Source of the DNA: Marsupella aquatica
Lineage: Eukaryota; Plantae; Marchantiophyta
DNA: 64,000 nt
Direction: 5' to 3'
Assembly (NCBI GenBank): GCA_973895155.1
Contig: OZ316898.1
Location: 13,047,659-13,111,658 of the forward strand
In this document: positions 11,088-52,800 of the stretch, one piece after another
Layout: every line of letters begins with the position of its first letter
Position numbering within the stretch: position 1 is the stretch's first letter
Notes under the pieces: model-generated
The model's input: only the letters and a program-made list of their open reading frames with translations
Told to the model about the DNA's origin: nothing
Databases searched by the model: none
Program-made: the position numbers and the translations under genes

Positions 11088-11776
11088 CTAGTTTGAACCC
11101 TTGCCAAAAGTGGAGAAAACTAAGGACCCTTCCCCTCACAGTACACTCTTCCTAGTCTTGAGACCCCCACCAAAGGGGACACAACAAAGGACCCTTACAC
11201 TTACAGTACACTGTTGCCTTGTTTGAGACCTCTCTCCAAAGAGGAGACAACAAAGGACCCTTACAATCACAGTACACTCTTGCTAGTTTGAGACCCCTAC
11301 CAAAAGGGGAGAAAGTAAAGGACCCTTACACTTACAGTACACTCTTGCAACCCCTACCAAAACTAAGGGGAGAAAATAAATAACCCTTACACTTACAGTA
11401 CACTCTTGCAACCCCTACCAAAACTAAGGGGAGAAAATAAATAACCCTTACACTTACAGTACACTCTTGCTGGTTTGAGATTCCTACAAAAAGGCAAGAG
11501 AACAACGGACTCTTACACTTACAGTACACTCGTGCTAGTTTGAGACCCCTACAAAAGGACCCTTACACTTACAGTACACTCTTGCTAGTTTGAGACCCCT
11601 ACAAAAAGGCAAGAGAACAAAGGACCCTTACAGTCACTTACAGTACACTATACACTGTCACTACTTTGAGACCCCTGCCAAAAGGGAAGACAGAAAGAAC
11701 CCTTGCACTTACAGTACACTCTTACTAGATTGAGACCCCCCACCCCACCAAAGGCGAGAAAAACGAAGGACCCTTA
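11088..11776. repeat. Degenerate minisatellite, ~11 units of ~50-70 bp with conserved core CCCTTACACTTACAGTACACTCTTGC
   Basis: The core recurs at near-regular spacing and two 61-bp units (~11324-11470) are identical. An isolated extra core lies at ~11983-12009. Confidence 0.9.
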
Positions 11777-28581: not shown

Positions 28582-28875
28582 CTCGGGAGTTTCATTTTCA
28601 CAAAAATGGCATATCACGTGCACGAAGGATAGGGTCATTTTATTGGTTCTAAGAGAAGACTTAAATTTTTTTGTAGAAGAACAATAGAATCTTTTAAATT
28701 CAATTTGAGACTTATAAGAACATTATGGTCTTTTTAATCCAATTTTTAGAATATTCCAAAAATATTCCAAATTTATAGGGGTTAAAAAATTTAAAAAAAT
28801 CTTGCATTTTAGGGGGTCCGAGGCCTAAAAATGTCGCAGGCGATGGGGAGGTCCCCATATAGTGAGACCCCCGAG
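28582..28875. mobile_element. 294-bp MITE (copy 1) of the P-like family
   Basis: TIRs CTCGGGAGTTTCATT / AGTGAGACCCCCGAG. Flanks CTAATGAC / CCAAGGAC (6/8 match, degenerate 8-bp TSD). Colinear with the copy at 34747-35042. Confidence 0.88.
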
Positions 28876-31800
28876 CCAAGGACAATGTCTCACTATGAGA
28901 CTGCAATTCTTTTGGTCAATAAACATACCAAATGTCAATATCTATACCCTAGACAAAAGCTCAACCTAATAACTAAAACTTGCAACTTACCCCAAATTTC
29001 TTCATCTCCTTGCCAAGGCTAGGCACCTTAACTCCCACACATGTTTTCTTACTTTCTTTTATCCCCAAATCCTAACTCAATTTCCCTTAATTCTATTTCA
29101 TCTTATCCATTTGATGAGGGCCATCTAAGAAAGTTATAATATCCATATTTTTCAAATTTGTTCATCATGTAGGTCCCCAAGCTAGTTAGCAACATCAAAA
29201 ATCTCAGCTCAAACTTGAGAGGACAAAATCATGGCAAGAAAACTTATTTGACGCGCATATCTTAGGATGTTGGCATACCCAAACCGGGACCCAAACTATA
29301 GCTGCATAGAAAGTGCATCATCAAACCCAAAGAGAAAAACTGACAAACTTAAGTACACACTCACTATGATCAGAGCTAATTATCAAATTATGACAACATG
29401 TATCTTTTCTTGTGACTATTCTGCAAATTATAACATATGATCTCATCCATCAATCTAAAATAATAATACATGACAACATGCAACTTTTCTTGTGACTACT
29501 GTGCATTGTTGTTCATCCTTCCCTTTCAATTGTTAGCTAATGATTGATCAAATGCGCCAATCAATCAGATCTAACAATGGAGTCAATCATCGTTGCTTTT
29601 TAAGTACATGCCCCATTAGGGAGTCTCAATCCCCTTGATGCCATAACCCAAGTTAAGGTTCACCCATATGGTACCTCACCGGGGGGTATAAGGTTTGACC
29701 CGACACTTAATGCAGTAGTTGGGGGAAATGGCCCCCTCCATTTCTGCAAATACTGTAAAATGCCGCGCTTCACATAGGAACGTCCATGATACCTTAACTG
29801 AGAGAAAATGTCGGCATTTGAATCATCTACTACTATAATAACGAATCCCCAGTTTTAGTCCTTCGTCCCGTTACAAAAATGAAAAAGGAGGGAACAAAGC
29901 TAAGCCATCAGATATTTTCTAGAATTATTTATGGCTCTTGGATTGAGTGAGATGGAAACCTAAAATTGGCTGTAAGTTATAGTACAAGGTAGATATAATA
30001 TGTCATAGAGTACTTGCATGTGTTACTGTAGTTATTTTGTAGCTTGCGTATAATACTGTTTGACATGGAGCATTAAAGTGTAAGTATATTATTTTATGGT
30101 CTATTAATTTAGAGTACATTTATATGTACATTTGGCATGGGGCATGAAAGTGAAAAGATTTACTTGAGATAATGGTTTTGGTAGGGAGCGAGCACTAAGG
30201 GGAAGAGAGTAGGTTGACATTATATTATTTTGACTTTTGCTCTTAAAAAGGAGATTTAACTCTTTGGTGTCATGGAATGAATGCAATGAATGTCTGTATA
30301 GTCAAGAATGTGTGTACATATAGTGGGGTCGGATGACCGGCTGGTCCGGTCGTCCGGTCAGAGGAGGTAGAGTCTAACACTTCCCTTTGGATATATAGTG
30401 ACAACTATATAGACAACATAGACTATACCTATTATATCATGTTCATAGGAAATACATGATATAAGTACAAGCGAGGTAGACTGCCTCGTTAAAAAACCTT
30501 TATCAACTCTAGCTTAGTAAAAACTCTACCAGTGTAGCAGAGAAAAAATATGAGTGCTAAAGGAAAAAGAGTGCAGCCTAACAGTCCTCGTCTTAATATA
30601 TAAATGTCAATGTTAAGTAAAGTTAGATGCTATAGTAAATCTAGCTTGAACATCTGTCTCAATAGTAGGTCGTCAACATCATGTCATCAGCATCATGTCG
30701 TCAGCATCATCAAGCATCATGTGGAGCAGCAGCCTCCACGGTCATCATGCATCGCACGCTCCGCAGTCCAATCGCCTGGCAGTGTCGGTGGTGAACTGAT
30801 GGCGATAGTGATTTGGTGAAGAGATCCGCACAATTGTCTACACTTGAAATCTGCAAAATGTTGATCTCTTTTCCATGTAACTCGTGGGTGTAGAAAGACT
30901 TCGGAGCTATATGCTTCACGAGATCGCCTTTGACGAATCCTTTCGTGATCTGCTGTATACATGTTGCGTTATCCTCAAAAATGTTAGTAGGCTTTGTTAG
31001 TGGTGGTAGGCCGCATTTGGTGTTGATGTGATTTATAAAGGATCGTAACCAAACGGCTTCACGACTAGCCTCATGTAGAGCTAAAATCTCTGAGTGATTC
31101 GATGAGGTTGCTGTTAGGGTCTGTTTCACACTTTTCCAAGAAAAAGCGGTACCCCCAATAGTGAAGACATATCCGATTTGGGATTTGGCGGTGTCAGTGT
31201 CGGAAAGATATCCGGCATCCGCATATCCTATGAGTTCGTGGTTTGCACCGAATGGGTAAAATAACCCAGTATCAGTGGTGCCACGCAGGTATCTAAATAT
31301 GTGCTTAACTCCGTTCCAATGTGTGGCTGTGGGAGTTGCATTGTGTCTAGCTAGTAAGTTAACTGCAAATGCAATGTCTGGTCGGGTCTGATTTGCTAAA
31401 TACATTAATGCCCCGGGGTCCTCACTTATTTCCTTCCAACCCATCACGCGCGAATAAGTATAGGGTTTTTTAATTCAATTTTGCGGAATACTTAAGAAGT
31501 TTTGTTGAAGAACTTTAGGGGTTGAGAAATACATATTGAAGCTTAGAAGTATAATAGGGGTGCTAAAAATCTCACTTCTTCAATCTAAGTTGTTAGTTTA
31601 AGATAGGGCATTTTAGGAGGGCCATATATGAGGGACACATGTCAATTTTTAATTGGTCCATGTGGCACTTCCTTATGTAAATAGGTTGTAGGGTTTAGGG
31701 GCAAAATGGGGGTTGGGTGGTGGGTTTGAGGGATAATTTTGAATTGTGTGGGCGGGAGATGGATCATGAGAGGGAGGGGACGGTAGGAAGTGTCGGTGCC

Positions 31801-34192
31801 TTTAGGGCCATGCATTACAATACAATGGCCGGGCCCTCAATTCCTCTCAAGAGCCGTTTGAATTGTTTGCCCAATTTGCGAGGCCATCGATCCATCCCCC
31901 GCATCCAATGGTGTAGGGTTGCTTGTCCGTTTAGGGCTAAGTGGGACTGTTGGAGAGGGACGATTGCGCTTTGTGAAGGGTAGCGATTGCACAGGGTGAG
32001 CCGCGGACCACGGGCTGGGTGCTGCCTCGATCTTTTTTGAAGGAAATGCAAAATTTGGGGTGTTGCGGCCGGGGTTGTGGCCATGATCAATGTGAGCTAA
32101 GGTGAGGGTCTGGGTATTGCTTCGAGTTTTTTTGAAGGAAATGCTTACACACAAGATGGGCATTGTGGCTCTATTGATCAAACTTAGGTGGAAGTTGTGA
32201 TTGTGATCAGCTGCGAGTGTGATCAGCTGCGAGTGGGATGAGCTGCGAGTTTGATCAGCTGAAGTCATTTTGGGAGTGAAAGTGATCCGGTGATAGTGGG
32301 CGATAGTGGGCGATCGGGCGATGCGGGTAATCTGTGTTGTCGTGATTACAGTGAAATTGATTGGGCGAGTACTGTGGGCACTGCAAGTGAGATCAAGCAA
32401 GTCTAAGGAGTTGCTTTGCATTATGGGCTGCGGGTGAGCTACTGGGTATTGCGGCTGCGATTGAGAGCTTGGGCAATGTGTTTGTGACAAATGCTGCTGA
32501 TTGAATGAGATCGGGGTGCGTTGTTGCTACATTTGAAGACCTTGTCAGGGCGCATGAGCTGCTACTGCGATTGAGTGAGGTGCTGTTGCGATTGAGTGAT
32601 TGAAGGTCGGGTGATCAGTCTGCTCTTGCTTTGCGATTGAGTCATGATTTGCTGCTGCTGCAACTGAGTGGAGGTTGGGGTGTGCTGCTACGCTGCGCTA
32701 CTGGCACATCCGCAGCAAATCAAGATTGAGTGGAGGTCAGGGTGTGCTGCATTGCTGGCTGCAATCAAGTTGGGTGAAGGTCGATTGAGTTTCTACAGAC
32801 AGTTGAGATTGAGATAAGCTGCGCTGTGTTGCTGGCTGCAAACGAGTTCATAGAAGGTGTGGTCGAGTGGTTTGTTGGCGCTGCACTGTCACTGGCTGCA
32901 ATTGAAGAAGCACAAGTGAGCTGCCTGATCAAGCTCAGCTCAGGTGACTGCATCTGGTGGAGTTCTTGCTCACTTCCCGGCTACTTTGATTTCATTCGCT
33001 TAGACTACACTCTAATCGATGCTTGGTTTATTTGCTAGATAGTGTTGTAATCTTTGTGTCGCTTTTGATCTCGGGTTCCCTTTGGTTGGTCTGGGAGAGT
33101 TCAAGCGAATATCAGCTGAAATGTGCTGTCATGTTTACCTTTCTGATGCGCAAAGTGACAGCCATCTCTGCCCTACGCAACCACTTTGCTTGCAGGGATT
33201 GAGCCCTACATACTGTCAACTTGCTCCTCAATCTTGTTTTGTTTACAAGCCAGCTATTTTGATTTGACTACTCTAGTGCAAGACAATGCAGTGTCCAGTG
33301 CTCTCAAATAATCCATAATATATTTACCTCCCCCTCTTTTGCAAGCAGATTTGTCTGCGGACCTGCTTGCAAGGATTGATTGATGGCTTAACACTCTAGA
33401 TATTGAAGTGAAAAGAAATAGTACTTTTTCCATTATTCAACCGAAGGAAGAATCTAATAAGAATTAGATTACTTGCTGAAAATCAGTCGAGAAACAAAAG
33501 CTTTAACTGACATTCAGTTGGCATTAATTCTGTTGTGTAGCTTGTTCAAGAAGAGGACAGTGTTGCTTGTCTCCCGACTTGTCTAGGATCTTTGTAAGTC
33601 TAGAACCTGGAACCAATTCTTGCAAAGGTATGTTAAGTTCTGGCTCTTGAGTTCACAATGTTATTTCTTGGTTTATGCTCAGTTCTCCATGACACTGTAA
33701 TTGTTTACTGTATGTAAAGCTCTTTTGTATTCCTTCTTCTTCTGTTCAGTTTGGTCTTAGTTATTGGATGTTGCATGGTATATATTCATTTACCTTTCTT
33801 AATTCCTTTATTTATGTATTAAGTCTTGTGTTTGCTCTCGACCAGGGGATGTATTTCCACCGGGAATGAACCTGGCCTTAGTTACACTCCTCGAATTCAG
33901 TGACCTACATTCTGATAAGTTAATATGTTTTGAACTCTTCGTGCAGGATGGATTGGTTTCCAGATTGGTTTAAGGTGTAGGGGAAGCATCTCATAAGCTT
34001 CAGCAATATATACGTTCAGACCCAAAATTTGTGGAGGGAGCAGACAATCAAGGTAACTATGCTTATATTCAGGATGCTCAATTTGTAGTTGCACCAATAA
34101 CTATGAATGTGTTGTTCAATGTTGAATGGATATCAAGCCAGGGTTGAAAATTGGATGCTGAGTAAATGGAGCATTTGTTGTGCAGAGGTAAA

Positions 34193-35150
34193 TTACCATC
34201 AGGCAAGCTGAGATGGCTTTGGATGTGCCACAGATTGACATATTTTCCCATAAGGAGCACCACCGCATGGATCCCCCTTGCTGTTTCTTTTGTGATGAGA
34301 CAGATGATTTTCGTATTTTGTGATGGTCCTTGTAGTAGATATTTTCACTTTGTTGGTGGAGAAGGTATACAGGGGGCCATTTGCACTCCTGTCACATTGC
34401 CTGAAAACAATGACTGGAGGGCACCCTGGGTTTGTCAATTGTGTGCTACCGGCAGAGCTAGATGCTTTGCTTGTGGACTCATTGGCAGATTTGAAAATCC
34501 CACAACAGAAGAATCTCTTGTGCTCCACTGTGCCCACCCTCATTGCTTTTCTCATTACCACCCTGGCTGCCTTAGGGTGCTACTTATGGTTGGGGCACTG
34601 CCTCAGAGGTCTCATCCAACAAGTCCTAAGAACCTAATGTGCCCAAGGCATTTTTGTGACTACTGTAAAGTCTACAAGGATGGGATTAAAGATTTTGTAC
34701 AGTGTCGTAGATGCCCTCATAGTTGGTGTCATGATGAGACCCCTGGCTCGGGGGTTTCACTTCCACAAAAATGACATATCACGTGCGACGAAGGATAGGG
34801 TCATTTTATTGGTTGTAAGGGAAGACTTAAGAATTTTTGTAGAAGAACAATAGGGTCTTTTAAATTCAATTGTGAGACTTATAAGAACATTAGGGCCTTT
34901 TTAATTCAATTTTTGGAATATTCCAAGAATATTCCAACTTTATAGGGGTTAAAAAATAATATTTTTTCTTACATTTTAGGGGGTCCAAGGCCTAAAAACG
35001 TCGCAGGTGATGGGGAGGTCCCCATGTAGTGAGACCCCCGAGACCCCTGGGGGGGTGAATTGGTTCCTGTGCAGCCTCATACCTCTTAGAGGCTATCAGA
35101 ATATTGTTAGAATTGCTTTGGTAAAGGCCTTATATAGCTGAGTAATCACA
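34193..35150 (+). pseudogene. EDM2/NSD-like tandem PHD zinc-finger gene inside the transposon, with a frameshift and a MITE insertion
   Basis: CCFFCDETDDF/(shift)/FCDGPCSRYFH...WVCQLCATGRARCFACG...CAHPHCFSHYHPGCL...MCPRHFCDYC...QCRRCPHSW follows the Cys/His spacing of the EDM2/NSD triple PHD cassette. The frame continues (GGVNWFLCS) after the MITE. Upstream exons at ~33540-34050 are possible but unresolved. Confidence 0.75.
34747..35042. mobile_element. 296-bp MITE (copy 2) of the P-like family
   Basis: TIRs CTCGGGGGTTTCACT / AGTGAGACCCCCGAG (14/15 match). Perfect 8-bp TSD ACCCCTGG (34739-34746, 35043-35050). Confidence 0.95.
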
Positions 35151-38100
35151 TGTGAACAATGATAATTTTGTTTTTGTTGGTGTCCTAATTTGGACATCAA
35201 AAGCTTATTTGAACTATTTTGGAGTAATTATCTCTAATACTCTTCTATTGTTTTGTTCTTTGTGCTATATGGCAGGTTCAGTCTATATGGGAGGTTCTTT
35301 ATCCCTGGGCCCCCAGCCTTTGTAAACTAAAGAGGTATACGTGCGTACACCCCCCTCCTTAGTACCCCTTATTATTTTTGGAAGCCTATAAAAATTTCTC
35401 TTGTTATTCTTAAAAACTTAATTTTGGAGAATAAATCTGCCCCTTTGAGATATTATAATTTCACATTTTACACCATTTATGAAAGCCTTGAAAAGTTATA
35501 AATTCATCATTTGCACACAGTTCTAAAACTGACGGGAGTGTTTTGGAAGGGTTTTGGGTACATACATTTTTGTGTTCGTGACCCTTTAACCCCAAACTTC
35601 AACTTTGGGGCATTTTTGAACCACACGACAGGGTAGTCAGGGTTCAAAAGCTCCAAAGTCCTAAACTACTTTGAATCATAGATGTTGCAAGCATAATTAT
35701 ATGTCATATACACATGTTCCAATAAAGGGTGGTCACAAGGACCAATCCTATTGTGACGCGTGTCACATCCATATTACATCACCTCTTGAAGCATATTAAC
35801 TTGGGCAACATTTATATAAGCCTATATTAGTTAGAAAGGGTTCTTTGAATAAAACCATCCCTTGATATTTCTAAGCCAATTATAAAAATTAATCTCAAAT
35901 CAGATTTTTTGCACCCTTCATCCGTTCGCACGTCCAACCCATTATTAATAATGCTGGGGGCCCAGGGTTCTTTATGTGACTGTGATTGTATTTAGAACCC
36001 TTGATTACTCTCTAACTTGAACAAATTGATTGAAATGGCTACCCAGTTTGTAAAATTACTTCACAAAAAGAGGGATGTGGTGACTGATGGGAAAGATGAA
36101 GAACCTATAGCTGTGTTGGCCTTCAAAGAAGGACAAACTTTAGCTGATTTTCGAAATCGAATTCCTGATTTGGTTGATTTTGATTTTGATTTCTGGGATT
36201 ATAGGCTTCCTGGTCGTATGAAGGTCAAGAGTGAGAAAATGACTGAGCTGTCTGAATTGGATGGAAAAGTTGTTGTCATTGAACAAATTGGATCCTTGCC
36301 TAGTGCTAGGACAGATTTTCCATCAGTTTCTGCTGCTGTCATCCAATCGGTTGCAGTGGACTCTTCCCAAGGTGAACAACTTCAAGATGCTCCCCCTGTG
36401 AGAGCTTCTTTTGAGTCTATTCTCATGTCTAAAGCAGCTGTCAAAGTCTGGAATGATGAATTTATAAGACTAGAGAAGTGAATTCACAAAAATGGGTATA
36501 AAAATCATAATTGGAGAATTCGAACATGGGATGAAGGACAAGATGTGAGAGGCCATCTAGAGTGTCTTGAGTGTAGAGTGATCTATGGGAGGGCAGACAA
36601 TTCCCAAGATAAGAAGTCAATTGCTAACCTATTCAGCAATTTTAAGACCAAGCACCTTGCCTTTGCTAAACACAAAGACAATTACTGCAGGAGAAGGGGC
36701 ATTGCTATGACTGGGGTCAAGCCCTCTGATCTTGCACAGAAGCCTGAGTTTGATTATGAGGGGGCCATAGCAACTGGCCTAGAGATAGTCCAGACTCTGA
36801 ATACTGAGTGTGGAGGTGATGATGAGCTATTTCATGTGCCCCCTATGCCTGGTGTAGCCAATAATGCAAACAAGTGGTTCCTTTATAAGGTTCGTTGTAA
36901 AGTCTGTGGGGCAATCATGGATTTGGTTTGTAAGAAAGGGACTTTGGACCACAACCTAAGGACACATTTGGTCAGTCGGGGTCACTTGGATGTAGTTGAA
37001 GCCAGAGAGAATACAGCTGAACTTGCATTGAGATCTGGAAAGAGGGGCAGACCAAGGAAGCCAGATGAGAGGGATCAACATCCTTCACAGAATTCAATTT
37101 TAAAATTCTTCAAGGAGGATGCTTCCAATGCAAGCAGCAGCTCTGGTACAGGTGGGTCTATAGACATTGATGTGGGCTTGAGTTTGCTTTGTTGGGGAAG
37201 ATGGGATGAATATGTAGAGTGGAAGAATGTGAAGTATGCTGTGAAGGGTATCTTGCATGATCAGTGTGGTGGACATGTATGGGATTTAGATGCTACAGTC
37301 TCTGTTGATGTCTACAATCCTAACACAAGTTCTATTGTACATATAAAAGGACTATTTAGGCATAGAGATTGCTCTAGGTTGTCCTTGTATGGTGGGGGGT
37401 TTTTGAACCTAACTTGCAGTAGATGTCATGTTATAACATTAGAAGATGACTTTCGTGGGCGGGTGCACAGGGAAGCAGAAGCTTTAGCAAAGAGAGGGGA
37501 AAGAAGCACAGAGGGTGGTTTGAATGCACGTTATTTGACACGTCCAGAGTTGACCAAACAGATGCATGGTCTGAATGTCAAGAGAAGAAAGGAGAGATGG
37601 TTGTTGGCACTACAGACTCAGAAAGTGTGTGCCCTTAGTACTAGGAAGAGAAAATTGTAGGAACTATTAGGAGTAGCTGCAGACAGAAAAGATTTGAGAC
37701 TTTTTCTAAGGAGTATTGTCAATGGTCATAGGAATGGTGCATTTGGTGGAAAAGAAGGTCTATGGGATTTCTTGAAGGATGTAGGTAAAACTTTGGAGAG
37801 AAATGCAAGGGGGTTTCGTTACAGTCAGAAAACAAAAGCCATAGCTCAGGCTATGTTTCAATATGGGGGCCGGCAGGTGGCCCATGTTTTTGCAAGGAAC
37901 TTAGCTGGGCCAAGCTTGAAGACACTAAAACGAGATAGAGCAAAATTTGTTCAATTTCGTGCTGGAATTAGGCCAGAAACATTCAAGGAGATGGCTCGGA
38001 TTTTGTCTGCTGCAAAGGAGATGTTGCAAATTCAGGGGGATGTTCCTGTCATGCTTGCAGAGGATGAAACCAGGATCAAGGAAAGCCCAAGGTATGTTTA

Positions 38101-40486
38101 TTACAACACATATTGATGCAATTGGAGTTGAAGACTATTTGTTAGACATGTAGTTTTATCAACTCTTTGGAACTTATCTCATTGACATTGGGCTCTCTGC
38201 AGGTGGGAGGCCAAATATGACACTCTGATTGGTTTTTGTGGTCATAAGGATGAGCACACTTGTGAATTTGGATTAGAAATTCTTGTAGGTGACGGTGAGG
38301 ATGGCTATAACAAGATTGTAAATACATTTGAGGATTTTAATAAGGGGATGTATGCTAGAGTTGTCATTGTGAATCCATTGCATGTTGGAATGCCAAAGTT
38401 GGTCCTCTGTGCTATATCAACCTGTAACAAATTCAAGGCAGAATGGGTACGAGAGCATTGGGTGCAATTGAAGGAATCTTGGGATGTGCATTGCAGAGAC
38501 TCTGTAGGTCCTTTGCTTGGGCATGCTAGTGATGGTGATGCAAGACGCAGGAAATTGATGTTAGAAGATTACAGAGGAGAAAATGGTTCTTACCCTAGAT
38601 TTTCTGTAGGGTGGGAAGGATGGCCTTACTCAGTTGCCATATTGCCTAATGGGGACCTCTATGGTTTTGGTGATCAAGACCAGCCTCACAATGGGAAAAA
38701 GTTGATAAACCCACTAGATCGAGTGTCCTCAATAATGGCACTTGGAGACCAACATGCTTCTCTGTTTCACGTTTGTACTGTGTACAATAGTTATCCAATT
38801 CATCAACATGGATTGAATTGGGATGATGTGAACAGATCTGACCGTTAGAATTGGGCTGGTCCCCAGAGGATAGCATCAGAAAAGGTGCGTGCATGTTTAG
38901 CAGATTTGCATCTAAGAACCGATCTGTTGTATGAACGAAGTTTGGGGACAGAGTTGTATTTGCAGATCTGTGCAGATTACATTGACATTTTCTACTCCCA
39001 GAGACATGATCTAAGGACTAGAGTGAAGCTGGCAGGAAAAGTTTCTTGGTTCTTTCGATTGTGGAGGTTGTGGTTAAGGTATGGTGATCATGCTGTAGGT
39101 GGAAATGTTGCTTCACATACAGAGAAAAATATGATTTCAATCCAAGCTTTTCATGATGTTAATATGTCTTGCCAGTTCATTGTGTTGCTTGTATGTGTAT
39201 TTCGTGACAAGTTTTCTCACTTGTGTATTCCATTTCATGAGTTGGGTTCTGATTGTTGTGAGATCTTTTTCAGCAAGGTAGGTGGAATGAGTGGCCATGA
39301 GAGAAATTATGATTTTGGTTCTTTGTTGGACAGTGCTGTTGGGTTGAATCGTCTTGCTGGATTAGAATGTGGACCAGAGGGCTTGAAAGTAGCTTGATCA
39401 CATAAAAAGTAAGATCATGTGTGGGCCAAGCTTCATCCTTTACTTGAAGGTGAAGATGCACCTAATCTTTTTGATTACTCTGAAGTGCAAACTAATGAGT
39501 TGGTGGTTGCAGCCTTGAAAGAAGGATTTGAAGAAGCAAAAGAGTTGCTTAGAATGTTGCAAATGTCTCCCCGAAGTGATCTGCCAGCATCAAGAAAGCG
39601 GTGGTGGACTCACCCTTGGCATGTGGAAGTTGAAACATGGCCAGATTCAGCTATCATAGTAGAAGCAATTGTTGTTGACGATTCTGAAGACCATGTAGAG
39701 CACAGATCTCCAATTGGACCTCGACTAGAAGGAGAGTTTCATGAATTTAAAGACCCTGAGGACGATCTAAATCAAATTGATGCATGGTTGATAGATGATG
39801 TAACCATTCCTGATGATGTTTTGCAGGATGGGGCCGAGTTAGACATACCAGAATCTCATTCTGTAGAGGTAGATACTTTGGGGCATGAGGTTCGTCATGT
39901 GTTGTCTTCTGTTGTGGCTGACCTTACAGAGTCTACTCAGAGCCCTCTACAGGAAAAGAGGAAGGTTTTGCCTACAGTTACCTATGAGGGCAGAACAATT
40001 TACAAATCTACTTTGGTGAGTCAACTAGTGGGCAACCCTCATTTGTCTAAGGATAGGCTCACAAGGGTGAAGCAAGTGGCATACTATAATCTTGGTAAGA
40101 GGAAACAATGTGATCCAAATATTGTGACCTGTTTTGTTGATGTTGGAAGTGATTGTGGAGTAGCATTTGAAAGTGCTAATGTTGCAGGCCCTTCTACAAG
40201 ATCAAAGAAAGGGAAAGGTAAAGGAAGAGGTAAAGCTAGGACTCAGGAACCAGAAGTGCAAGCCAAGAAAGAATTTTGGCTTGGTCGTATTATGATGATG
40301 AGACAGAAAGTTAAGGGACAATGGACTAGAGTGAGATCTGCTATTGATTTGCTTGACAGGCCAACACCTCCTCATGGACACATAGGGAGTATTTGTCAGT
40401 TCTTATTTAATTGGTATAAGCCAATAAGCTCAAGCAAGGTTGAATTTGTTGGGTATTTACTCTTACGTCTAGGTTAGGTATGACGT

Positions 40487-40665
40487 GGTTGGTACAACAA
40501 TGTGGGTTGGTACAACAATCTGGTTAGGTACAACAATGTGGTTAGGTACAACTACGTGATTAGGTACAATAATGTGGTTAGGTACAACTACGTGATTAGG
40601 TACAACTACGTGATTAGGTACAACAATGTGGTTAGGTACAACTACGTGATTAGGTACAACAATGT
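40487..40665. repeat. 18-bp tandem array within the 5' LTR (10 units; 7 units in the 3' LTR at ~46154-46278)
   Basis: Units G(G/A)TTAGGTACAAC(A/T)A(T/C)GT, counted directly. Confidence 0.92.
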
Positions 40666-41688
40666 GGTTAGGTTAACTAAGTTGCACACTATATCATAAG
40701 AGGCACGTGTGCTTGGAGATGTAGAACCAAGGCTCATTGTTATGGAGCCACTTGAGAGATAGGGAGAGCTTACACTGTGGAGACTCGGTACAGCCGACGG
40801 GCTTAGAGTTCAGTAAAGCTCTCTTGTGTGTTCCCGTGGACGTAGCCTCAAGGAGATGAACCACGTATCTCTTGTGTCGACTACTTGCATGTTGGATATG
40901 TCATGTGCTTACCATTGCGATTATCGTCTATACTCAATAATTGGTATCAGAGCATGCCTGGGAGGTGACGTGTGTTCGTGACGGGATTTCGTGACGGTTT
41001 TTTCCAGCGTTGAGTGTCGGTGGATTTCCCGGAGTTCTGTCGCATGGAACTTGGAGTTTATGGGCTCAACGGATAGATCAGGGCAAGGGCTTTCTAATAG
41101 TGTGAAGAAATCGTTGAACGAAGCTTGTGGTGCGAAGAGATCTAAGTTTTTATCGTTCTAGATTTTGTGAAGAAAGTCGGCAACATTCGTGTTCGACGGT
41201 TTTTTGGAGGTTGTTTTTTCGACGGTGTGAGCTCTACGGCGAAGGAAGCGTCGCATGTTATAGCTCCATTTGTAGATCGGGACGAGCTGATCATTTCGGT
41301 AGCTGGTTTGTTGCCGAGTGTATAACGAGTATGTCACAACGAGCAAAAGAAGCGTTCTGATTTTTTGACCGGCTATGGAGTCTTCTTTTGCCTGAGCGGG
41401 GTTTCTTGGTGTTGCAATCGACTCGGAGGGAGAAGCGTCAAGTGTTTTGACTCAACAGAGAGATTGAGGCAAGACAATTGTTTTGAGTCCGGGATTGGCT
41501 CTTGATGCGAAGAGGAAGGCTAAGAAAAATCATTTACCTTGTTGGACTTGGTGACGGCATCGAGTGTAATTCATCAACATTCGTTGTTGACAAGCATTGG
41601 AAAACTAGGCTCGTGGGCTACGTGGCAGTGATAACCTTTGAGTTTTTTGAGAGGTTAAGAAAAACATCATTTTTTCTTGATTTCTCAC

Positions 41689-44600
41689 ATGAGTGACTTG
41701 GAGGAGGGTTCTATTGAGTCACCGGAGAGAACAGAGGAGGAAGCAGAAGATCTAGCGAAATTGTGGTCACCGGTATTGCGGCGAATGACAAGAAAAAGGA
41801 TGGGGACAATCAAGCTTGGAGGTCCCAAGTTTGAGGTTACAAAATACGATGGCCGCACGGACTACTTGTTGTGGGAGCGACAAGTGAAGGGGGTACTCCG
41901 TGCGACCGGGCTTGGGAAATTGCTGAAGGACCAGCCAAATGATGTCGACAATGATGATTGGCAGGACATGCAGGAGCAGGCTGTGAGCACCATGATGCAC
42001 TATCTTCAGCCTAATGTCATCAAGCAATTGGCAGACCATGTCAATTGTGCATCATTGTTTTCCGCGTTGGAGCAAAAGTACCATCAAAAGGAGCTATCGA
42101 ATCGGCTCTACACATCTTTGAAGCTTATGAGCTTCAAGATGAAGGAGGGAAGTGCAAAGATTCAGGACCATATCGATGGTTTCAACGACCTGGTCGTTGA
42201 TTTGCAAAATCTGGGGGAGGATTTGAGTGATGAGCGGCAGGCTTTTCACTTGCTTAGCTCTTTACCCTTGTCGTATCAGTCATTGTCATGAGTGCTGCTT
42301 CATCGTGACAGGAAGACTATCACTTACAATGAAGTTGTAAGTGCTCTGTTGACTGATGACTTGCAGCAGAAATTGACCATGCCCTCTCAGCCATCATCAT
42401 CGTCTGGTGCTGCCTTGAATGTGAATCGTGGGAGGTCACAGAAGCATCCAGAGCACCACACGAATGGCAGGGGAAGAAGTAAATCTAGGACAAGATTTGC
42501 TTCAAGGGGGAAGTCCCAAGAGAGGAAGCCGATGGTATGCTGGAAGTGTGGCAAGACTGGCCACATTAAGAAGGATTGTAAGGGTAAGGCAGCTGAATCT
42601 TCATCAGCCAATGTGGCTAGTGTTGATGGAGAAGTTGATTTACTCAACGATGAGTATGTTTTATGAAGTCAGGAGTATGCCCTGTGCACATCATCTAGGA
42701 GAGCAAATGATGTGTGGATTCTTGATTGTGCTTGCTCCTTTCACATTTGTTACATTCGCGAGTATTTCAATTCTTATTCTATGTCAAACGGTTCAGTTTT
42801 GATGGGAAATGATCACTCCTGTCAAGTTGAGGGTATTGGGTCTGTAAAGATTCAAATGTTTGATGGCATTGTGCGCACAGTGTCCGGAGTCAGGTTTGTA
42901 CCTGGCATGCGTAAGAATTTGATTTCACTTGGTGTGTTGGATACAAATGGTCATCAATGGCGAGTAATTGATGGTGAACTTCAAGTCATGTCGGTAGAGA
43001 TAGTGATTTTGAAGGGGCGCAGATAAAAGAATTTGTATGTGTTGCAGGGCAATACAGTATGTGGAGAGGCCAATGTGACCAAGTCTCACGAGGAAATGAC
43101 TCAACTATGGCATTCACGGCTAGGCCACATGAGTGAGAAGGGTTTGGCTATCTTGCAGAAGAATGGGCTCATTTCTAATTTGCAGTCTTGTAAATTGGAT
43201 TTATGTGAGCATTGCATTTTTGGAAAGCAACATCGTCGTGCTTTCGGTATCGGAACTCATCATTCCAAAGCGGTTCTTGAGTACATACATAGTGACGTGT
43301 GGGGACCATCCTCGACTCCCTCACATTCTAGAAAATTGTACTATGTATCCTTTATTGATGATTACTCAAGATTTGTATGGATTTATTTCATGACGCATAA
43401 GTCTGATGTCTTGTCCATTTTTACAAAGTGGAAGGCCCAAGTAGAGAATCAGATAGGAAACACGGTTAAGTATTTGGATACAAGGGTGAAGAGTCTAAGG
43501 TCAGACAACGGCGGGGAGTTATCCCCTACAGAACAGGGGATAACTCGTCATCTCACCACAGTTTATACTCCACAGCAGAATGGTATAGCTGAGAGGCTCA
43601 ATCAAACATGTATTGGAGCGGTCACGGAGTATGCTGAGCCAATCAGGTTTACCACAGGAATTTTGGGCAAAAGCTGTCAATACTGCAGCTTATTTGGTAA
43701 ATCTTTCTCCTTCTAGTGCAATCAATTTCAAAACGCCGTTTGAAATGCGTTATAAGCGGCAAGTAGACTATCATGGCTTGGTAGTTTTTGGAAGTGATGC
43801 ATATGCTCTCACACCAAAGCAGAATAGGACCAAGTTGGATCCTACATCCAAGAAATGTATTTTTCTTGGGTATCAGAGTGGTGTGAAGGCCTACAGGTTA
43901 TGGGATCTTATTGCCTGTAAGCTCGTTGTTAGTAGGGATGTTTCTTTCAATGAATCCAGATTATTGAAGGAGGGGGAGAATACTCAGGTTTCCCGTACTG
44001 ACAAAGGAAAATCTCCTATCCCGAATCTCGTTGAGGGGGAGATTGATCATGAAGTGCATGATCGAAGAGAAGGAGGTGCTCCAAGCATGGAGCTGGTTCC
44101 TGTGCCAGAGGAACAAAAGGAGTTTATTGATGCTGGTGAGCAGCAAATGGATGCTGCTGAGCTTCAAATTGTACCAGTAGACGTAATTCAACTGGAGTCA
44201 TCGGCTAGAAGAACATCTGGTCGTACTGTACGCGCTCCTCCTAGGTATGGACAGTGGGTTGATTCATCTCAACTGCAAGAGGATGATTTTGCAGCTGATG
44301 ATGAGGGTGATGCGTTAATTTTGGAAGAATGGGAACCTTCTTCATTTCATGAGGCAAGTGCTTCAAAGGAGAAGCAGAAGTGGACTGCATCAATGCAAAC
44401 GGAGATGCAGTCACTAAAGGACAACAAAACTTGGGAGCTTGTTAAGCTGCCTAAGGGTCGATCAACAAGTGGTGGACAGCAAGTGGATTTACAAGGTGAA
44501 GGATAATTCCACGAGAGATGGATCGAAGGTCTACAAGGCTAGGTTGGTAGCAAAGGGATTCACACAAGAGAAAGGTGTGGATTATAATGAGGTCTTCTCA

Positions 44601-45923
44601 CCAGTTGCTAAATACTCTACAATACGGCTATTGTGTGTACTTATTGTAATATTTGGTCTGCTGCTAGATCAGATGGATGTTGTCACAGCTTTCCTCTATG
44701 GCACCTTGGAAGAGGTGATCTTCATGAGACAACCGCTAGGTTTTGTGAAGAGAGGACAGGAGGAATTGGTTTGCAGATTGCTGAAATCCTTGTATGGGTT
44801 GAAGCAGTCACCAAGACAGTGGAATAAGCGGTTTGACGATTGGATTCGGTCACAAGGTTTTCACAGAAGTGTATTTGACCCTTGTGTGTATTTGAAACCG
44901 GTGAAGAATGTTGTCTTTGGGTTCATTGTATTAGTACTTTATGTGGATGACATGCTTATTGCGGCCAAGGATAGGTCTGAGATTGTTAAGCTTAATGCAC
45001 TGCTCAGTGCAGAGTTTAAGATGAAGGACCTGGGGCCAGCTAAGAGGATTTTGGGTATGGAGATCACTAGGGACTTGGAGGCTGGTAAGCTATGGTTGAC
45101 ACAGAGCAGTTATGCGAGGAAGGTAATTGTTAGGTTCAACATGGGAGATAGCAAGCCAGTAAGTACCCCTTTGGCTGCACACTTCAAATTGTCATCAGCT
45201 TTCTATCCCACAGATGCGACAGAGAAGGGGCTGATGTCAAAGGTTCCTTATGATAAGGCAGTGGGAAGTCTCATGTATTTGATGACTTGCACTAGACCTG
45301 ATCTTGCCATGGCTATGGGCAAGGTGAGTAGGTACATGTCAAATCCAGGGAAGGTACATTGGGAAGCAATGAAGTGGATTATCAGGTACTTGAAGGGTAC
45401 GGTGGATCATGGTCTTTTATTTGATGCGAATGCAAAGAATGCTAGATCATTGATTGGCTATGTAGATTCTGACTATGGACAAGATTTGGACCGAAGAAGA
45501 TCAACAACAGGATACGTGTTCACACTTGGCGGTGGATGCATAAGTTGGAGGCCTACTTTGCAGAAGTGTATTGCTCAGTCTACTACAGAAGTGGAGTATG
45601 TTGCAACTGCGGAAGCAGCAAAGGAAGCGATTTGGTTGGATAGACTTATCACTGAAATGGGATTGCCATAGGGGAATGTGAAGCTCCATTGTGATAGTCA
45701 AAGTGCGCTCCACCTTGCTGTGAACCAGGTGATGGATAGCAGAGTGAAGCACATTGACGTCAGATACCATTTTATCAGGCAGGCTGTGTCTGATAATTTG
45801 TTTGAGCTAGTCAAGATTGATGATAAACTCAACCCGGCTGACGCATTTACCAAAGTGATTCCTTTGGAGAGTTTCTCTAGACACCGTGACGTATTGCAGG
45901 TTTTGCAATTGCATCACAAGTAG
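41689..45923 (+). pseudogene. Copia gag-pol polyprotein (gag, CCHC knuckle, protease, GAG-pre-integrase, integrase, RT, RNase H) with stops and frameshifts
   Basis: CWKCGKTGHIKKDC; WILDCACSFH; LWHSRLGHMSEKG; HSDVWGP, RSDNGGE, PQQNGIAER; YKARLVAKGFTQ; LYGLKQSPRQW; YVDDMLI; GYVDSDYG; KHIDVRYHFIR. Confidence 0.95.
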
Positions 45924-48900
45924 AGTTTTCTTAACATTCATTGTAATTACTGATATATGCTCTTCCTCATTCCTATGTATTAGGCTACGGCTTAGTTCTG
46001 GTTTGCTCTAGTTAGAGAGGGAAACCGGTTTGGTTTTTGTCCAAAACTTCCCGCTGAGGGATCATATACATTTGCAGTATTACTCTCCCCTAGACCAGAG
46101 TCAAGGGGAAGATTGTTGGGTATTTACTCTTACGTCTAGGTTAGGTATGACGTGGTTGGTACAACAACGTGGGTTGGTACAACAACCTGGTTAGGTACAA
46201 CAATGTGGTTAGGTACAACTACGTGATTAGGACAACAATGTGGTTAGGTACAACTACGTGATTAGGTACAACAATGTGGTTAGGTTAACTAAGTTGCACA
46301 CTATATCATAAGAGGCACGTGTGCTTGGAGATGTAGAACCAAGGCTCATTGTTATGGAGCCACTTGAGAGATAGGGAGAGCTTACACTGTGGAGACCCGG
46401 TACAGCCAACGGGCTTAGAGTTCATTAAAGCTCTCTTGTGTGTTCCCATGGACGTAGCCTCAAGGAGGTGAACCACGTATCTCTTGTGTCGACTACTTGC
46501 ATGTTGGATATGTCATGTGCTTACCGTTGCGATTATCGTCTATACTCAACAGAATTCACTTATGATATGACTGATTTACAATGGATTGATATAGAAATGG
46601 TGATGACTAATGTTACTCTAAGCATGAAACAAGGGATTGGCTTAGTGTATGTGTTAGATCGAGTTGACAAACAAGCTTTGGATACTTATCTAGAGACCAT
46701 GTCTAGAGTTGAATGATGTGCATGCACCAAAACTCATGGTAGTGGTTTAAGTAGGTACAAGGATAGGCTAGGGGAATATGCTAGGGGGTGGCAGATTTGG
46801 ATATTTGGGCTTCTTGCTCAATCAGGGGTTCAATTCCCCTCTGCCACATACACTCATTCAGATTTTTTACTCAATTTTCTTTTGGTGCACCTACCGTTCA
46901 CATGAGACAAGCATAGGAGATTGCAAATATGAACAACTCATACTGTATATTGCTTAAGCTTCTACTAGAATTGAGATTCTAAGTAGTGGAAGTATCTGCA
47001 CTATATACTATAAGTTTTTTATGATAAGATATGGATGTCAAAGGAGCATAGTAGGGCTTGAATGAGCTTCACAAAGACTCAAATAATCTTGACAAACACT
47101 CAAAAAAGGTGCGCATTTGAAAGAACTTTTCTTTTCTTAGTAAGGTATGTTTTAATGATGGCAAAACTTTACTTAACCTTTTTTAGGGGTCAAAATTTAA
47201 GGATTTGGAATTCTTCTAAAGTATGATAGGGAGGGGAAATTTATTTTTTTACTTAATAAGCTAGGGTCGCAGGGGACCAAAATGTCGAGCATGGTATGAG
47301 GGCCTCTGTATACTGAGGCCCCCGAGATTAATGCTCCTATTGCGGAAAGGTATGGGGTTTCTGGTCCTAATAGTGGTTCATGTTCTTTGCGCTTGCGAAA
47401 AACATCAGTATTGTTTTCTAATGAACGTACAACCATTGGTGACGTCAATGGGTGTGCTAGGTTCATATTGAACTCTTTTAGGATCTTTTCGGTTTGTTGG
47501 ATTGTGCAGTAATGAAGTTTTGCAGTTTGTGCAGTTATAGGTGATGATTTACTCATGCCCTGGTTAAGTGCACATGCGGCTTTGTATAGTTGAGTTTTCT
47601 TTGTTACGGTGTGCAGTTATGAATGTTTTGCGGTTATGTGCGCTTATTTGGTTAAGTGCAAAATTTCCTTTGTAATCAAGATTTCTTTGACAGATTGTGC
47701 GCTTAGGGATTTTGCACTTAAATGTGCGTTTATGGTTAAGTGCAACTTTTCCTTTGTATCTGAAATCTCTTTGACGGATATTGCAATTAAAGAGGGTTTT
47801 GCACTTAGCAGCGGTTTCTCGATGTTTTTTGATTGATGTTGCGAAATTTTGATTTCAACGACCTCCTTCCAAGCTCCTCTACGGTCTTTGCTATAGCTCC
47901 AGCCTTCCGTGACTGTTATTGCTTCGATTCTTTCATTTTTGTCCTCCTCTTCTAATTGTTTTGTTTTTTTCTCAGGTTCCAATCCTGTGTGTTATGTCCT
48001 TATGGGGATTGAGGTGGTGGCTGCCTCTCTCTCACCCTTTCGAATCTCAGTGCCTCCGCTTCAACTTCGAGCTCTCTTCCTCTATTTGTTGTCGTTGTTC
48101 GATCAGGTTTCCAGGGGTTTGCGCTTGTCCTTCAGATTCCAATCGGCCTCTGCAACGATTTGTGCTCTCTTTCTGTTTGTGGCTTTGATCAGTTTCTGCT
48201 TCTAAAGTTTTCTCTTTTACTTTGTTAATCTGCCTCCTTGCTGCCCCGGTCGTTAACTGCTTATGATCGATATGCTGCAGTTTCGATTCGATGAATGGGT
48301 CCCGTTGCCTCTTTTTCTTCTCAAAATAATTTTCTTGCAGAATCGGTCCTCACAGTGCCTCTCGTCCATTCTTTCTCTTCAGAAGGTGATTTCGATTGGA
48401 CTCTTTTCAATTCTCAGTTGTCCATGCTGTTCTGATCAATTTTCTTCTCAGCATGCTTCTCCTTATTGTGTTCTTGATCCGCATCGATCTTTTCGCTTCT
48501 CGGTGTCCTTATGAATCAGTGCGTTTCTGCTTCTTCCGCCTTTTTAATTTTCATATGCTTCTGGCTGGGTCTCTTTAATTTCTTCTTACTCGATTGTGAC
48601 TCAATTCGCCATAGGTTTTCTTCTCGATTCTCCTTTTGCTCCGCTCGGTGAGCTTTCGTGCTGATAACGTGTCATGGAATGAATGCAATGAATGTCTGTA
48701 TAGTCAAGAATGTGTGTACATATAGTGGGGTCGGATGACCGGCTGGTCCGGTCATCCGGTCAGAGGAGGTAGAGTCTAACATTTGGAAGTTAGTTAATTT
48801 TTAGTTATCTTGCATGGACCCCAATTTCTATTTTGCACAATGATATCTTTCACTCAAATTTTTTTTGTGTAATAATGTATTTTAACAATTATTATTTTTA

Positions 48901-49179
48901 TTCAACGATTATCTTTTGCACCACATACGATCTATTTCTCAACAACATCTTTAACCAAACAACATCTATTATGCAACGAACAGGGATTGAAAGGATATCG
49001 AGAGAATGGTCATCTTTGCTAAACCCTAAAACACTAAATCTGAAACCGATAATATAACGTTGCTCCAATTTATAGTGGTAGCCATTCAAATGCATGGGCA
49101 TTTTGGGTAAAAAAACAAAACAAAGAAAAAGAAAAAGACTCACTCCTTCTTAGTTTCCTTGATTTTTTATTTTATAACA

Positions 49180-49872
49180 TCTTTCACAGAAGGATAGCTT
49201 GGGTGAAACAACACCATTTTTCTTTTTAACATCTTTTACTTGACGATATCTTTGGCAAAATGACACCTTTTTCTTAATAACATCTTTCACACAATGGCAT
49301 GTTTGGCAAAACTACTTTTTTTAAGACATCTTTTTACTTTGTGACATCTTTCACTTAACAACATCTTGGGCAACACAACATCTTATTTCTTAACAACATC
49401 TTTTGTCCAACGCACGGATATTTTCCGTGAACGATGTCTTGGCCGACACAACGTTTTTTCTCAACATCTTCGCCAACATGACAATTTTTTCTCAACGACA
49501 TCTTGGCCGACACAACGTCTTTTTTCTCAACGACTTCTTGGCCGACATGACATTTTTTTGCTCAATGATCTCTTGGCCAACACGACATCTTTTTTTCTCA
49601 ACGTCTTCTTGGCCAACACAACTTCTTTTCTCTCAATGACGTCTTGGCCGACATGACATCTTTACTCTCAACGACCTCTTGGGCGACACGACATCATTTC
49701 TCTCAACGACCTCTTGGGTAACACAACATCTTTTCTCTCCACAACCTCTTGGGCAACATGACATCTTTTCTCCCCACGACCTCCTAGGCAACACTACATC
49801 TTTTTTCTCCACGACCTCTTGGCTGACACTACATCATTTTTTCTCAATGACATCTTGGCCGACACGACTTCT
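49180..49872. repeat. Degenerate ~35-bp minisatellite inside the Helitron 3' arm
   Basis: Repeated TCTTGG(C/G)C(G/A)ACAC(A/G)ACATCTTTT..TCTCAACGAC units. Confidence 0.85.
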
Positions 49873-52800
49873 TTTGTGCAACGCACAGGTATTGAGCTAG
49901 TTAATTATAAAATCTATCAGCAGAGATCGTAGATGAGCTGCCTCTCGATCATACCTCTTGCATACAATGTCGACAATGTGCTATCGAGACCTCTTGCATA
50001 GAATGTTGAGGATATCCTGCCGATAGCGCGACTGATGGGAGTGTGGGAGCCTGTATATATGTTTGAACAAGACAGAGTGTTCTACTCGTCTGTTTGTGGC
50101 CCGTCAAGCATCTGCTTATCTGGGTCGAGGCTGTTTACTAACAGAAATGGCAAACAGCAAATTCCCATGGCCAAAAGTAAAGGAATGCAAAATGAGCATA
50201 TCATAATTATGAGTTATGGGGACGTTGTTAAGATAGACTTTTAGTCACCAAAACCTAGGTTTAAGGTTCCCTATTGTCTTGATAGTTACAACATAGCCAC
50301 AACAATGCCATGGTCACAAGGACAACATTTTTGCAGCAAAAACACATTTATGGCAACAATAATTGTACCATGTACAGGGATGTGGTTGTATTCACATAAT
50401 AATACTCAGTTGTTTGCATTAACTATTACTTTAATTGTCCACATAAAGTTCTATCACTAATCCTTTCCGCAACAGTCACAATATCCCCGGTAGTGGTTAG
50501 TCTGAAGCTACTCGAAGACTTTGCATTTTTGCAAAATGCATTGAGACCAGAATACATCATTCTCTATTACATTGCCTTCACCGCTTCTACAGAGAATCAA
50601 CTCAGTCCATCACATTTATCACTGTGCGTTGCATTCCACTAACTAAAGAAAATATAAAAATATTCTCTATTCTTGCAAGAAACATACATATATTATATCA
50701 ATGAGTTAGTCATGTCATTGAAAGTTCAGTTCCTTTAAGCTCATTAGGGATCTCCTCCCTATAAATACCGTATTGACACTTTCCATCCAGGCTCATCCTG
50801 GAACTTAGTTATTTCACCCCTGGCTCTGACAAGCTGGGGAGGAAAAAACTAGCCATGCACAAGTGGAATACTCAATAAAGTGTTTTGCTACTCTCTTGGT
50901 TTATATAGCTCAACAATCAACTAACTGGAACGAGCATGAGTCTATGAGTGAATTGAGATGATTGCATCAAACAAATTAAAGGGTGATGCTGGTTTTATAA
51001 AAGATTGATTGAAAATTTCTGAAGCTCTCCAACTAGGCCTGTTAGAATTTAATTTTTCCAGTCACTCTCCCCACCCCCACCTCGCAGAGAAAACCTATGA
51101 TTGCTATGTTTCCTGTCTCCCCCTTCACAAACTTAAAAGCAGTCCTCCCATTTTTCTAAAAGGCCTGGACCTTCCTTTCAAAAACACACATTGGCCCCTA
51201 TCCCAAGGCTATCCCCCCAACAAGAGAAGGGAAAAAACCATTGTCCTTCCCCACTTATCCTCACTCTCCCTTCTAAATCCAAAACACAAAATAAATAAAA
51301 CCCCAAAGGGTTCCCCTCCTTTTTGCTCATGTTGGGAACAAAACAAACCAAAACAAAACAAAATGTACCCTCCTCCCTTTTGCAAGAAAGGAAAGAGGAG
51401 TGATGGGGTTAGAAGATTACTCGATCATTTGTACCTTCAGTCGGACTGCCTCCTTCCTTTGCTCAACTTTCTTTTGTATATATATATTGGGCTATATATG
51501 GACCCATATCGAGAGCTTCTCCAATCCAGTGACTTTAATGAAATGAGTCATGTCCACAACAATCCTATTTGAGGGTGAACATTCCATTTTTGATGCATTC
51601 CAAATGAAATACACACACACACACACACACATTCAAGCATCAGACCTTTGAGTTTGTGTTGAGCAAAGATGACATTCACAAATGGTATGTCCATGACCAT
51701 CAACAAGTTACAAGTAGTTGGCACACACATATGTGGTTCTGTCACCTTAGATGAAGCTATGTACTTGGGAAGTTCAACACACAATCTGAGCTTTATTACA
51801 CTCTAGGCCCATTGGTCATACCGAGTCTTCCTATCCCTCAACTGGCTCCGTAACGCCTGGGCACCCTCTCCATGTAAAAGAAGTGGACCCCCTGTGATCA
51901 TGACTTCTTTCTATTTACCCCTTCTTATTTCCATTTTACTATAAAAAAAAATCTTGTACGAGTAATGTAAGTTTATAATTATTAGTTCAAAATGAATAAA
52001 AAAATACCCTTTGAGAGTTTGCACATGCTCCACATATTAGTTAAGACTGAGGGCCCAAGGTCCGTAACAATGAGCTCGAGTTCCTCCCAACAAGCAAATA
52101 TTATCCACTTGTGTATATAGTGTGCAGCGCAACTAACCTAACCAAGTCTGTGACTAACTAAAGGTTACTTAGCCTTAGAGCTACGGCTATAGTCATAACT
52201 CTAGACCTAAGAGCGGGCCAGAGAGTAACTGCCTAACAGTTTGGACGTGAGAGGTTACACAAGTTTTCTGACAAGTCAAAATCCTCCTCCACAAAACAGA
52301 TATGGAATACACTCAATGAACATAAGAATTTCAATAATTAGTAGTTAGTTACCCTAATTAAATTAGAATACAACATAAGCTCAAGAAAAGTGAAAACTAA
52401 TTAGTGACTATAACTCAACTAAACATAAACTTGCAGCCTTAAATTTCTTTGCCTCTCCTGCATGTCCACTTACCCTGACCTTCCATCCATTTGTCCCCTC
52501 TCTCAGTCCCAACTCACAGTTTTCTTTTAGTTTCCCTTCAATCTCTTTCATGTGATTGGTTTGATAAGGGTCATCAAAAAGTTTAGGGAAGTCTGTTTTT
52601 CCTCAACTTTGTTTAGTAAATTCAAAATTGATGGAATAACCAACAAGACAGCCCTCACTGACTAAAATCAAAATCAAAATAATAACCAAATAAAAATGAG
52701 TTGGGGATTGAAATAGAGATGCGCCATATTGCATCATCAAGATATTCACCCGATATGCAGGTTACTTTGAGATGTGAGGTATTTGTAAGAAATCCAGACG

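Follow-up and report, generated by a model that had tools for sequence, protein, structure and literature searches.

A stretch of 64,000 nucleotides from the liverwort Marsupella aquatica (contig OZ316898.1, positions 13,047,659 to 13,111,658 of the forward strand; the whole stretch is called the window below) contains a large insertion at positions 31412-47326, which raises the question of the superfamily to which its very long transposase belongs. An original prediction, made from the letters alone, proposed a P-element-like DNA transposon in a land plant, with a giant transposase and a second, chromatin-reader gene. Here, this proposal is examined by means of similarity searches, structure prediction and comparison with relatives, and other superfamilies are weighed against it. 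Our results make it very probable that the insertion is an inactivated autonomous DNA transposon from a deep-branching lineage of the P (P/THAP9) superfamily that lacks the THAP domain.

Including its nested insertions, the element spans 15,915 bp on the plus strand, and its boundaries are given by a target site duplication (TSD), terminal inverted repeats (TIRs) and the reading frame of the gene into which it inserted. The 8-bp TSD ATTAATGC is present with the same letters at 31404-31411 and at 47327-47334, where it abuts the 3' end. The 5' TIR CCCGGGGTCCTCAC (31412-31425) pairs with the 3' TIR CTCGGGGGCCTCAG (reverse complement, 47313-47326, minus strand) at 11 of 14 bases. The termini are thus short, imperfect and of the form C(C/T)CGGGG, without the usual CA, as had been predicted.

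The flanks belong to a Copia pol gene on the minus strand, with the downstream half at 30713-31411 and the upstream half at 47327-47556. Read on that strand, they run ...PYLSAIGAL up to the junction and (A)LMYLANQTRPDIAF... across from it (MYLANQTRPDIAF... after the junction), and when the element is taken out the pol frame becomes whole again. This restored frame is far stronger evidence for the boundaries than a chance match of 8 bp would be. In a comparison with the pol of a second Copia, nested inside the element (see below), the downstream flank can be aligned from residue 277 onwards (43% identity, E 1e-35), and the insertion point lies ca 30 residues past the RVT_2 domain. The insertion therefore split pol at the junction of reverse transcriptase (RT) and RNase H; the perfect TSD and the split Copia gene of the original prediction stand, while its placement within RT proper does not.

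Related ends are also found elsewhere. Three further insertions in the window have related termini and 8-bp TSDs (ACCCCTGG, TTCTTTAT and one that has decayed to 6/8). In another liverwort, Calypogeia fissa (locus L001, 5750-15856), a 10.1-kb element has the TIRs CCCTGGGCCCTCAC and CTCTAGGCCCTCAC and the 8-bp TSD TGTACAAG, and contains an intact, intronless gene of 1529 codons whose product is called P0208 here. This naturally intact copy is an independent confirmation of both the type of ends and the length of the TSD.

We now consider the transposase gene. A single frame stays open between 36005 and 40477 except for a few stops, and joining 36035-38091, 38203-40446 and 46557-46716 gives, by a script count, 1486 codons and a stop with no frameshift, in agreement with the predicted length. 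The joined frame was used only for the codon count and the motif coordinates, and the stop-free pieces were searched separately. Exon 1 (36035-38091, plus strand, as is the whole gene) encodes the N-terminal domain with two Cx2C...H fingers, an AT-hook, a coiled coil, a region resembling a helix-turn-helix (HTH) and the first catalytic Asp, in the motif AEDET (38057-38071). It is followed by 111 nt with GT..AG ends (38092-38202). Since the flanking exons are gaplessly collinear with the intronless P0208, this is a real intron. The first part of exon 2 (38203-40446) contains SDGD (38528-38539), DQPHNGKK (38678-38701, DQPH itself at 38678-38689), the alpha-helical insertion region, SDCCEIFFS (39248-39274) and the C-terminal region. 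The last 52 codons and the stop lie beyond the nested Copia at 46557-46716, where they align to residues 1481-1525 of P0208; in all, P0208 is collinear with the seven transposase segments of the window. The motifs listed in the original prediction are present, and the spacing from the second Asp to the Glu, given there as ca 243 residues, maps at 241-243.

Five stops interrupt this frame, TGA 36479 and TAG 37658 in exon 1 and TAG 38846, TGA 39395 and TAA 39410 in exon 2, and the nested Copia breaks it again at 40446/46557. The copy is for these reasons dead, although structurally complete. In contigs of other copies, the codons at 36479-36481 and 38846-38848 are essentially all sense (Trp and Gln, respectively), which makes these two stops, out of five, private to the window copy. 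Relatives have Glu at the position of the 37658 stop.

The most direct evidence for the superfamily comes from the fold. An AlphaFold2 model was built for P0022, a metagenomic relative of 1061 residues whose core shares 41% identity with the window, on the basis of a 100-sequence alignment. The model has a predicted local distance difference test score (pLDDT) of 80.4, above 95 in the core, and a predicted template modelling (TM) score of 0.72. It contains an RNase H-like core in which the Asp-Asp-Glu (DDE) residues occupy their typical places: the first Asp is on a strand, the second at a strand end, and the Glu on a helix that comes after ca 150 all-helical residues (helices at model residues 469-612, between DxxH and Glu). 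In a Foldseek search, its top match is the Drosophila P transposase, with E values of 5.6e-11 (6pe2) and 1.1e-10 (6p5a) and target-normalised TM scores of 0.64-0.68; the corresponding VIA Z scores are 24.4 and 24.5. The VIA alignment with 6p5a pairs model residues 166-663 with P 135-565 and includes 406 of 442 residues, with a root-mean-square deviation (rmsd) of 4.9 and an identity of ca 14%. Within the aligned span lie the HTH of P, the RNase H domain with both of its halves, the alpha-helical insertion domain and the beginning of the C-terminal domain, all of which are named as P transposase domains in a review of P elements (PMC7776569).

Other solved transposases match less well. Transib (VIA Z 12.3) and RAG1 (Foldseek E 5e-5, VIA Z 10.5) are the second-best structural matches. 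They have in common with the family an RNase H core with an insertion domain, but they differ in their 5-bp TSDs and hairpin-forming chemistry, and the match is half as strong as that of P. Hermes, a hAT transposase, reaches VIA Z scores of 7.8-8.0 over 270-289 residues, with an rmsd of 8-9. Among the superfamilies with the C/DxxH signature, 8-bp TSDs occur only in hAT and P. Of these two, hAT is rejected on the basis of the fold. Four 8-bp TSDs were found here (ATTAATGC and those of the two MITE insertions and the Calypogeia element given above).

Sequence comparisons give weaker indications in the same direction. No Pfam match at E<=1 was obtained for any of the seven transposase pieces of the window, and phmmer searches with three core pieces against the PDB sequences returned only chance matches (best E 0.62). 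When 77 family members were scanned one by one at E<=1, however, P models were the only transposase families to recur, all below threshold: PF12017 (Tnp_P_element HTH) in 4/77 members (best E 3.2e-5), PF21787 (TNP-like_RNaseH_N) in 4/77 (best E 5.1e-4) and PF21788 (TNP-like_GBD) in 1/77 (E 0.13). In the ESM Atlas, the neighbours of the Glu-bearing piece of the window (score 0.96) are clusters with PF21788, PF21789 and THAP9_C. The P-like nature of the transposase is thus backed by fold, weak Pfam matches and language-model neighbours, independently of the motifs on which it had been proposed.

With Drosophila P, vertebrate THAP9 and zebrafish Pdre2, the window family has in common the 8-bp TSD (7-8 bp in the P superfamily), a DDE core with D-x2-H after the second Asp, an all-alpha insertion domain that divides the RNase H fold, the HTH before the core with a coiled coil upstream, short TIRs (13 bp in zebrafish Pdre2) and the presence of internally deleted or miniature derivatives (PMC7776569). 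There are also clear differences. In place of the THAP domain, the window family has two Cx2C...H finger-like modules and an AT-hook; its termini are C(C/T)CGGGG instead of CATG; its protein is almost twice as long (ca 1490-1530 residues), with an added beta-rich C-terminal domain; it lies below every Pfam P threshold; and its hosts include liverworts and a fern.

It is important to point out what weighs against the assignment. The modelled fold is that of a metagenomic relative with 41% identity and not of the window protein, whose stops bar contiguous folding. No member reaches the Pfam threshold for the P/THAP9 models (PF12017, PF21787-9 and PF12596), and the family profile finds only chance matches, and no P transposase, among the PDB sequences. 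The TIRs are short and unlike P termini. Furthermore, no THAP match was obtained at E<=1 in the window pieces or the 77 relatives, as the original prediction had anticipated; according to the P-element review, THAP belongs to the P transposase domain set and is restricted to animals (PMC7776569). Finally, Kolobok, Dada and Novosib have no solved structure and could hence not be ranked in the fold search.

This last point opens the way for the alternative that survives best, namely that the element belongs to one of these three named superfamilies and that P is just the nearest solved fold. Their cores have no Pfam model either (PMC5751038), and the fold search is blind to them. Novosib, moreover, likewise makes 8-bp TSDs. 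The target of Kolobok is TTAA, duplicated as a 4-bp TSD, and Dada leaves TSDs of 6-7 bp in small-RNA genes. The four 8-bp TSDs, which are unrelated to TTAA, fit neither of these two. As to Novosib, the C/DxxH signature is not attributed to it, and it stands outside the superfamilies that have this signature (PMC9587614), whereas DxxH is nearly invariant in the window family. In addition, the weak Pfam matches are specific to the HTH, RNase H N-terminal and GBD models of P, and the structural match to P spans 406 of 442 residues, insertion domain included. We therefore consider this option improbable.

Even less probable is an independent lineage of superfamily rank, descended from the same ancestor as P but to be classified apart from it. 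The missing significant Pfam, HMM (hidden Markov model) or PDB-sequence link to P, the different DNA-binding head, the extra C-terminal domain and the low identity in the structural alignment would all agree with such a lineage. The question is, however, one of rank and not of kind, and the core architecture, TSD length, DxxH and weak HMM matches make P the nearest kin.

A divergent hAT element is the least credible of the alternatives and, in our view, very nearly dismissed. Like Ac and Hermes, the family combines 8-bp TSDs with a C/DxxH motif (CxxH in hAT) and an insertion domain in the RNase H fold, an xxExFS motif lies at the last catalytic residue, where hAT elements have a motif resembling S..ER.FS, and the N-terminal Cx2C...H fingers recall BED fingers. 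The Hermes match is nonetheless weak (Z ca 8 against 24.5 for P), the termini are different, and neither the hAT dimerisation domain (PF05699) nor zf-BED nor any other hAT Pfam model matches the 77 members at E<=1. Two further candidates were rejected: KDZ/Zisupton, on the basis of a P-like fold and no KDZ or CxC Pfam match in the 77 members at E<=1, and MULE/Mutator, with its 9-11-bp TSDs, long TIRs and MULE or Transposase_mut domain, on the basis of 8-bp TSDs, TIRs of ca 14 bp and no MULE Pfam match in the window pieces or the 77 members at E<=1.

Returning to the assignment to P, the layout of the transposase begins with the Cx2C...H modules and the AT-hook. The coiled coil and the HTH come next, then the DDE core, which the all-alpha insertion domain divides, and last the beta-rich C-terminal domain, with the parts from the HTH onwards as predicted from the relative. 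By analogy with P elements, the enzyme would bind the subterminal regions and the ca 14-bp inverted repeats, with contacts from the fingers and the HTH; the two ends would be paired by dimerisation and the element excised by DDE cleavage; and integration would take place with an 8-bp stagger. Any use of guanosine triphosphate (GTP) would likewise be a property carried over from P. The two families of miniature inverted-repeat transposable elements (MITEs) in the window, MITE-A and MITE-B, have the termini of the element and could be mobilised in trans by the same enzyme. As to the history of this copy, it landed in Copia pol and afterwards acquired the five nonsense mutations, a Copia in its C-terminal domain and two MITE insertions.

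At the N-terminus, the two Cx2C...H modules are followed by the AT-hook GKRGRPRK and then by a long coiled coil. After the AT-hook there is also a short stretch, QNSILKFF (37097-37111), conserved as Q..I..FF in liverwort relatives. The N-terminal piece 36482-37657, folded on a 9-sequence alignment, gave a pLDDT of 54.8. In a wide structure search with this low-confidence model, the long helix at its end was the only part to find matches, which were coiled coils (Z ca 5), and there was no informative match for the finger modules. At the other end, the beta-rich domain (P0022 888-997, corresponding to window positions ca 40270-40446 plus 46557-46716) weakly resembles the BAH domains of EBS, SHL, DNMT1 (BAH1) and ZMET2 with Z scores of 6.7-7.3, which lie inside the noise band of the tool. 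The C-terminal 240 residues of P0208 have no informative neighbour in the ESM Atlas (best score 0.76). Elsewhere in the family, a PTM/DIR17-like Tudor domain (Pfam E 1e-9) is found at the end of P0054, and a SAP domain in P0071.

We now turn to the distribution of the family. A HMMER search with the piece 38186-38845 against 1.84 billion representative proteins gave 555 relatives at E<=1e-3, of which 42 also pass E<=1e-30, and a profile search added more. In addition to the liverworts Riccia sorocarpa (62% identity) and Calypogeia fissa, there is a fern member, from Adiantum nelumboides, and there are animal members from Amphiura, Mytilus, Clytia and Desmophyllum (echinoderm, mollusc and cnidarian); the remaining members are metagenome proteins. 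The predicted P-like lineage is thus indeed found in land plants, but it is not confined to them. Throughout the family, E-D-E of AEDET, S-D-G-D, D..H..KK and G.D..E (GSDCCExFFS) are invariant or nearly so. In a quick FastTree analysis of the core piece, with SH-like support only and midpoint rooting, the window groups with the Riccia, Calypogeia and Adiantum proteins in a clade of 22 rows that is well supported, apart from a clade of 78 rows in which the Mytilus and Amphiura proteins are found.

In four public sequencing runs, between 339 and 1953 contigs per run fall on the gene, with identities of 88-100%, which indicates a high-copy family. Some contigs in all four runs skip 86-91 nt within the intron (38099-38191), and other copies thus have a shorter or different intron.

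These results bear on how plant transposable elements are annotated. The annotation works with a fixed list of superfamilies, on which P-type cut-and-paste elements are not normally found for land plants. A recent survey of 1007 plant genomes, which relied on Pfam models to screen for P, reported no more than seven active superfamilies, and P was not among them (PMC12973397). Since the window family escapes every Pfam P model, pipelines of this kind miss it. The missed family is nonetheless high-copy in at least two sequenced organisms, intact in Calypogeia fissa and apparently the driver of its own MITEs. It would also extend the P architecture to a lineage without THAP, and thereby provide a naturally occurring case in which to ask what is proper to the core enzyme among the features of P, for example GTP dependence and the 8-bp stagger.

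The two cognate MITE families with 8-bp duplications are new here. MITE-A is present in two copies on the plus strand with the common termini CTCGGGGG(T)(T/C)TCAC. The first (28582-28875) lies outside the element, and its flanks CTAATGAC and CCAAGGAC match at 6/8, i.e. a decayed TSD. The second (34747-35042, 296 bp) lies inside it, with the cognate termini CTCGGGGGTTTCAC...GTGAGACCCCCGAG and the perfect TSD ACCCCTGG at 34739-34746 and 35043-35050. The likeness of MITE-A to the element is end-specific, with the 5' subterminus resembling the 5' and the 3' the 3'. MITE-B (35303-35967, 665 bp) has a perfect 15-bp TIR, CCCTGGGCCCCCAGC, and the TSD TTCTTTAT at 35295-35302 and 35968-35975, and is 68% identical over 232 bp to the 5' end of the Calypogeia element. 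In the 5' subterminal region of the window element (31453-31700, plus strand), which resembles the 5' subterminus of MITE-A, the motif TAGGG(G/T)(T/C) occurs five times on the same strand; it is also found twice in the 3' subterminus (47184-47268) and two to three times in each MITE-A. From their sequence and position, these motifs may be candidate transposase-binding repeats. Further inside, at 32000-32860 (plus strand), the 5' part of the element contains degenerate 16-21-bp repeats of the GCTGCGAG type, which are GC-rich (ca 0.5) and strongly G-skewed.

The second gene of the element is a multi-PHD gene of the NSD/EDM2 type (34243-35150, plus strand; PF22908, E 4e-8), broken by a frameshift near 34300 and by the second MITE-A copy. 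An intact relative of 247 residues (P0272; 52% identity) is present in another assembly. In the Calypogeia fissa element, no PHD gene was found by tblastn or tblastx, and the open reading frames in its 5' part have no Pfam match. The chromatin-reader gene of the original prediction is therefore real, but it is broken and not a fixed part of the family. Its status as cargo holds for the window copy only, and a family accessory gene and a one-off capture are both possible.

These observations invite a further, speculative proposal, which we regard as rather unlikely, namely that the THAP-less clade is an undescribed ancient P-like branch, vertically kept in land plants and equipped with chromatin-reading modules that steer integration or counter silencing. 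The BAH-like C-terminal domain and, in some elements, a separate multi-PHD protein would be these modules.

The nested Copia long terminal repeat (LTR) retrotransposon occupies 40447-46551 (plus strand), with LTRs at 40447-40939 and 46114-46551 and the 5-bp TSD GAATT at 40442-40446 and 46552-46556. Its primer-binding site is of the Met-tRNA type, gag-pre-integrase, rve and RVT_2 domains are encoded, and the insertion is fairly young. Its LTRs are ca 98% identical over the 300-nt repeat found and differ in length by 55 bp in an 18-bp tandem array, and the frames for gag, integrase and RT, though long, are shifted.

Outside the element, a 116-nt direct repeat with 98% identity flanks the insertion (30267-30382 and 48669-48784). 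Without the element, its two copies would be ca 2.5 kb apart, and it probably belongs to the host Copia or to a different nested repeat. The window also contains two tandem arrays, at 49165-49891 with a period of ca 35 bp and at 11043-11760 with a period of ca 65 bp.

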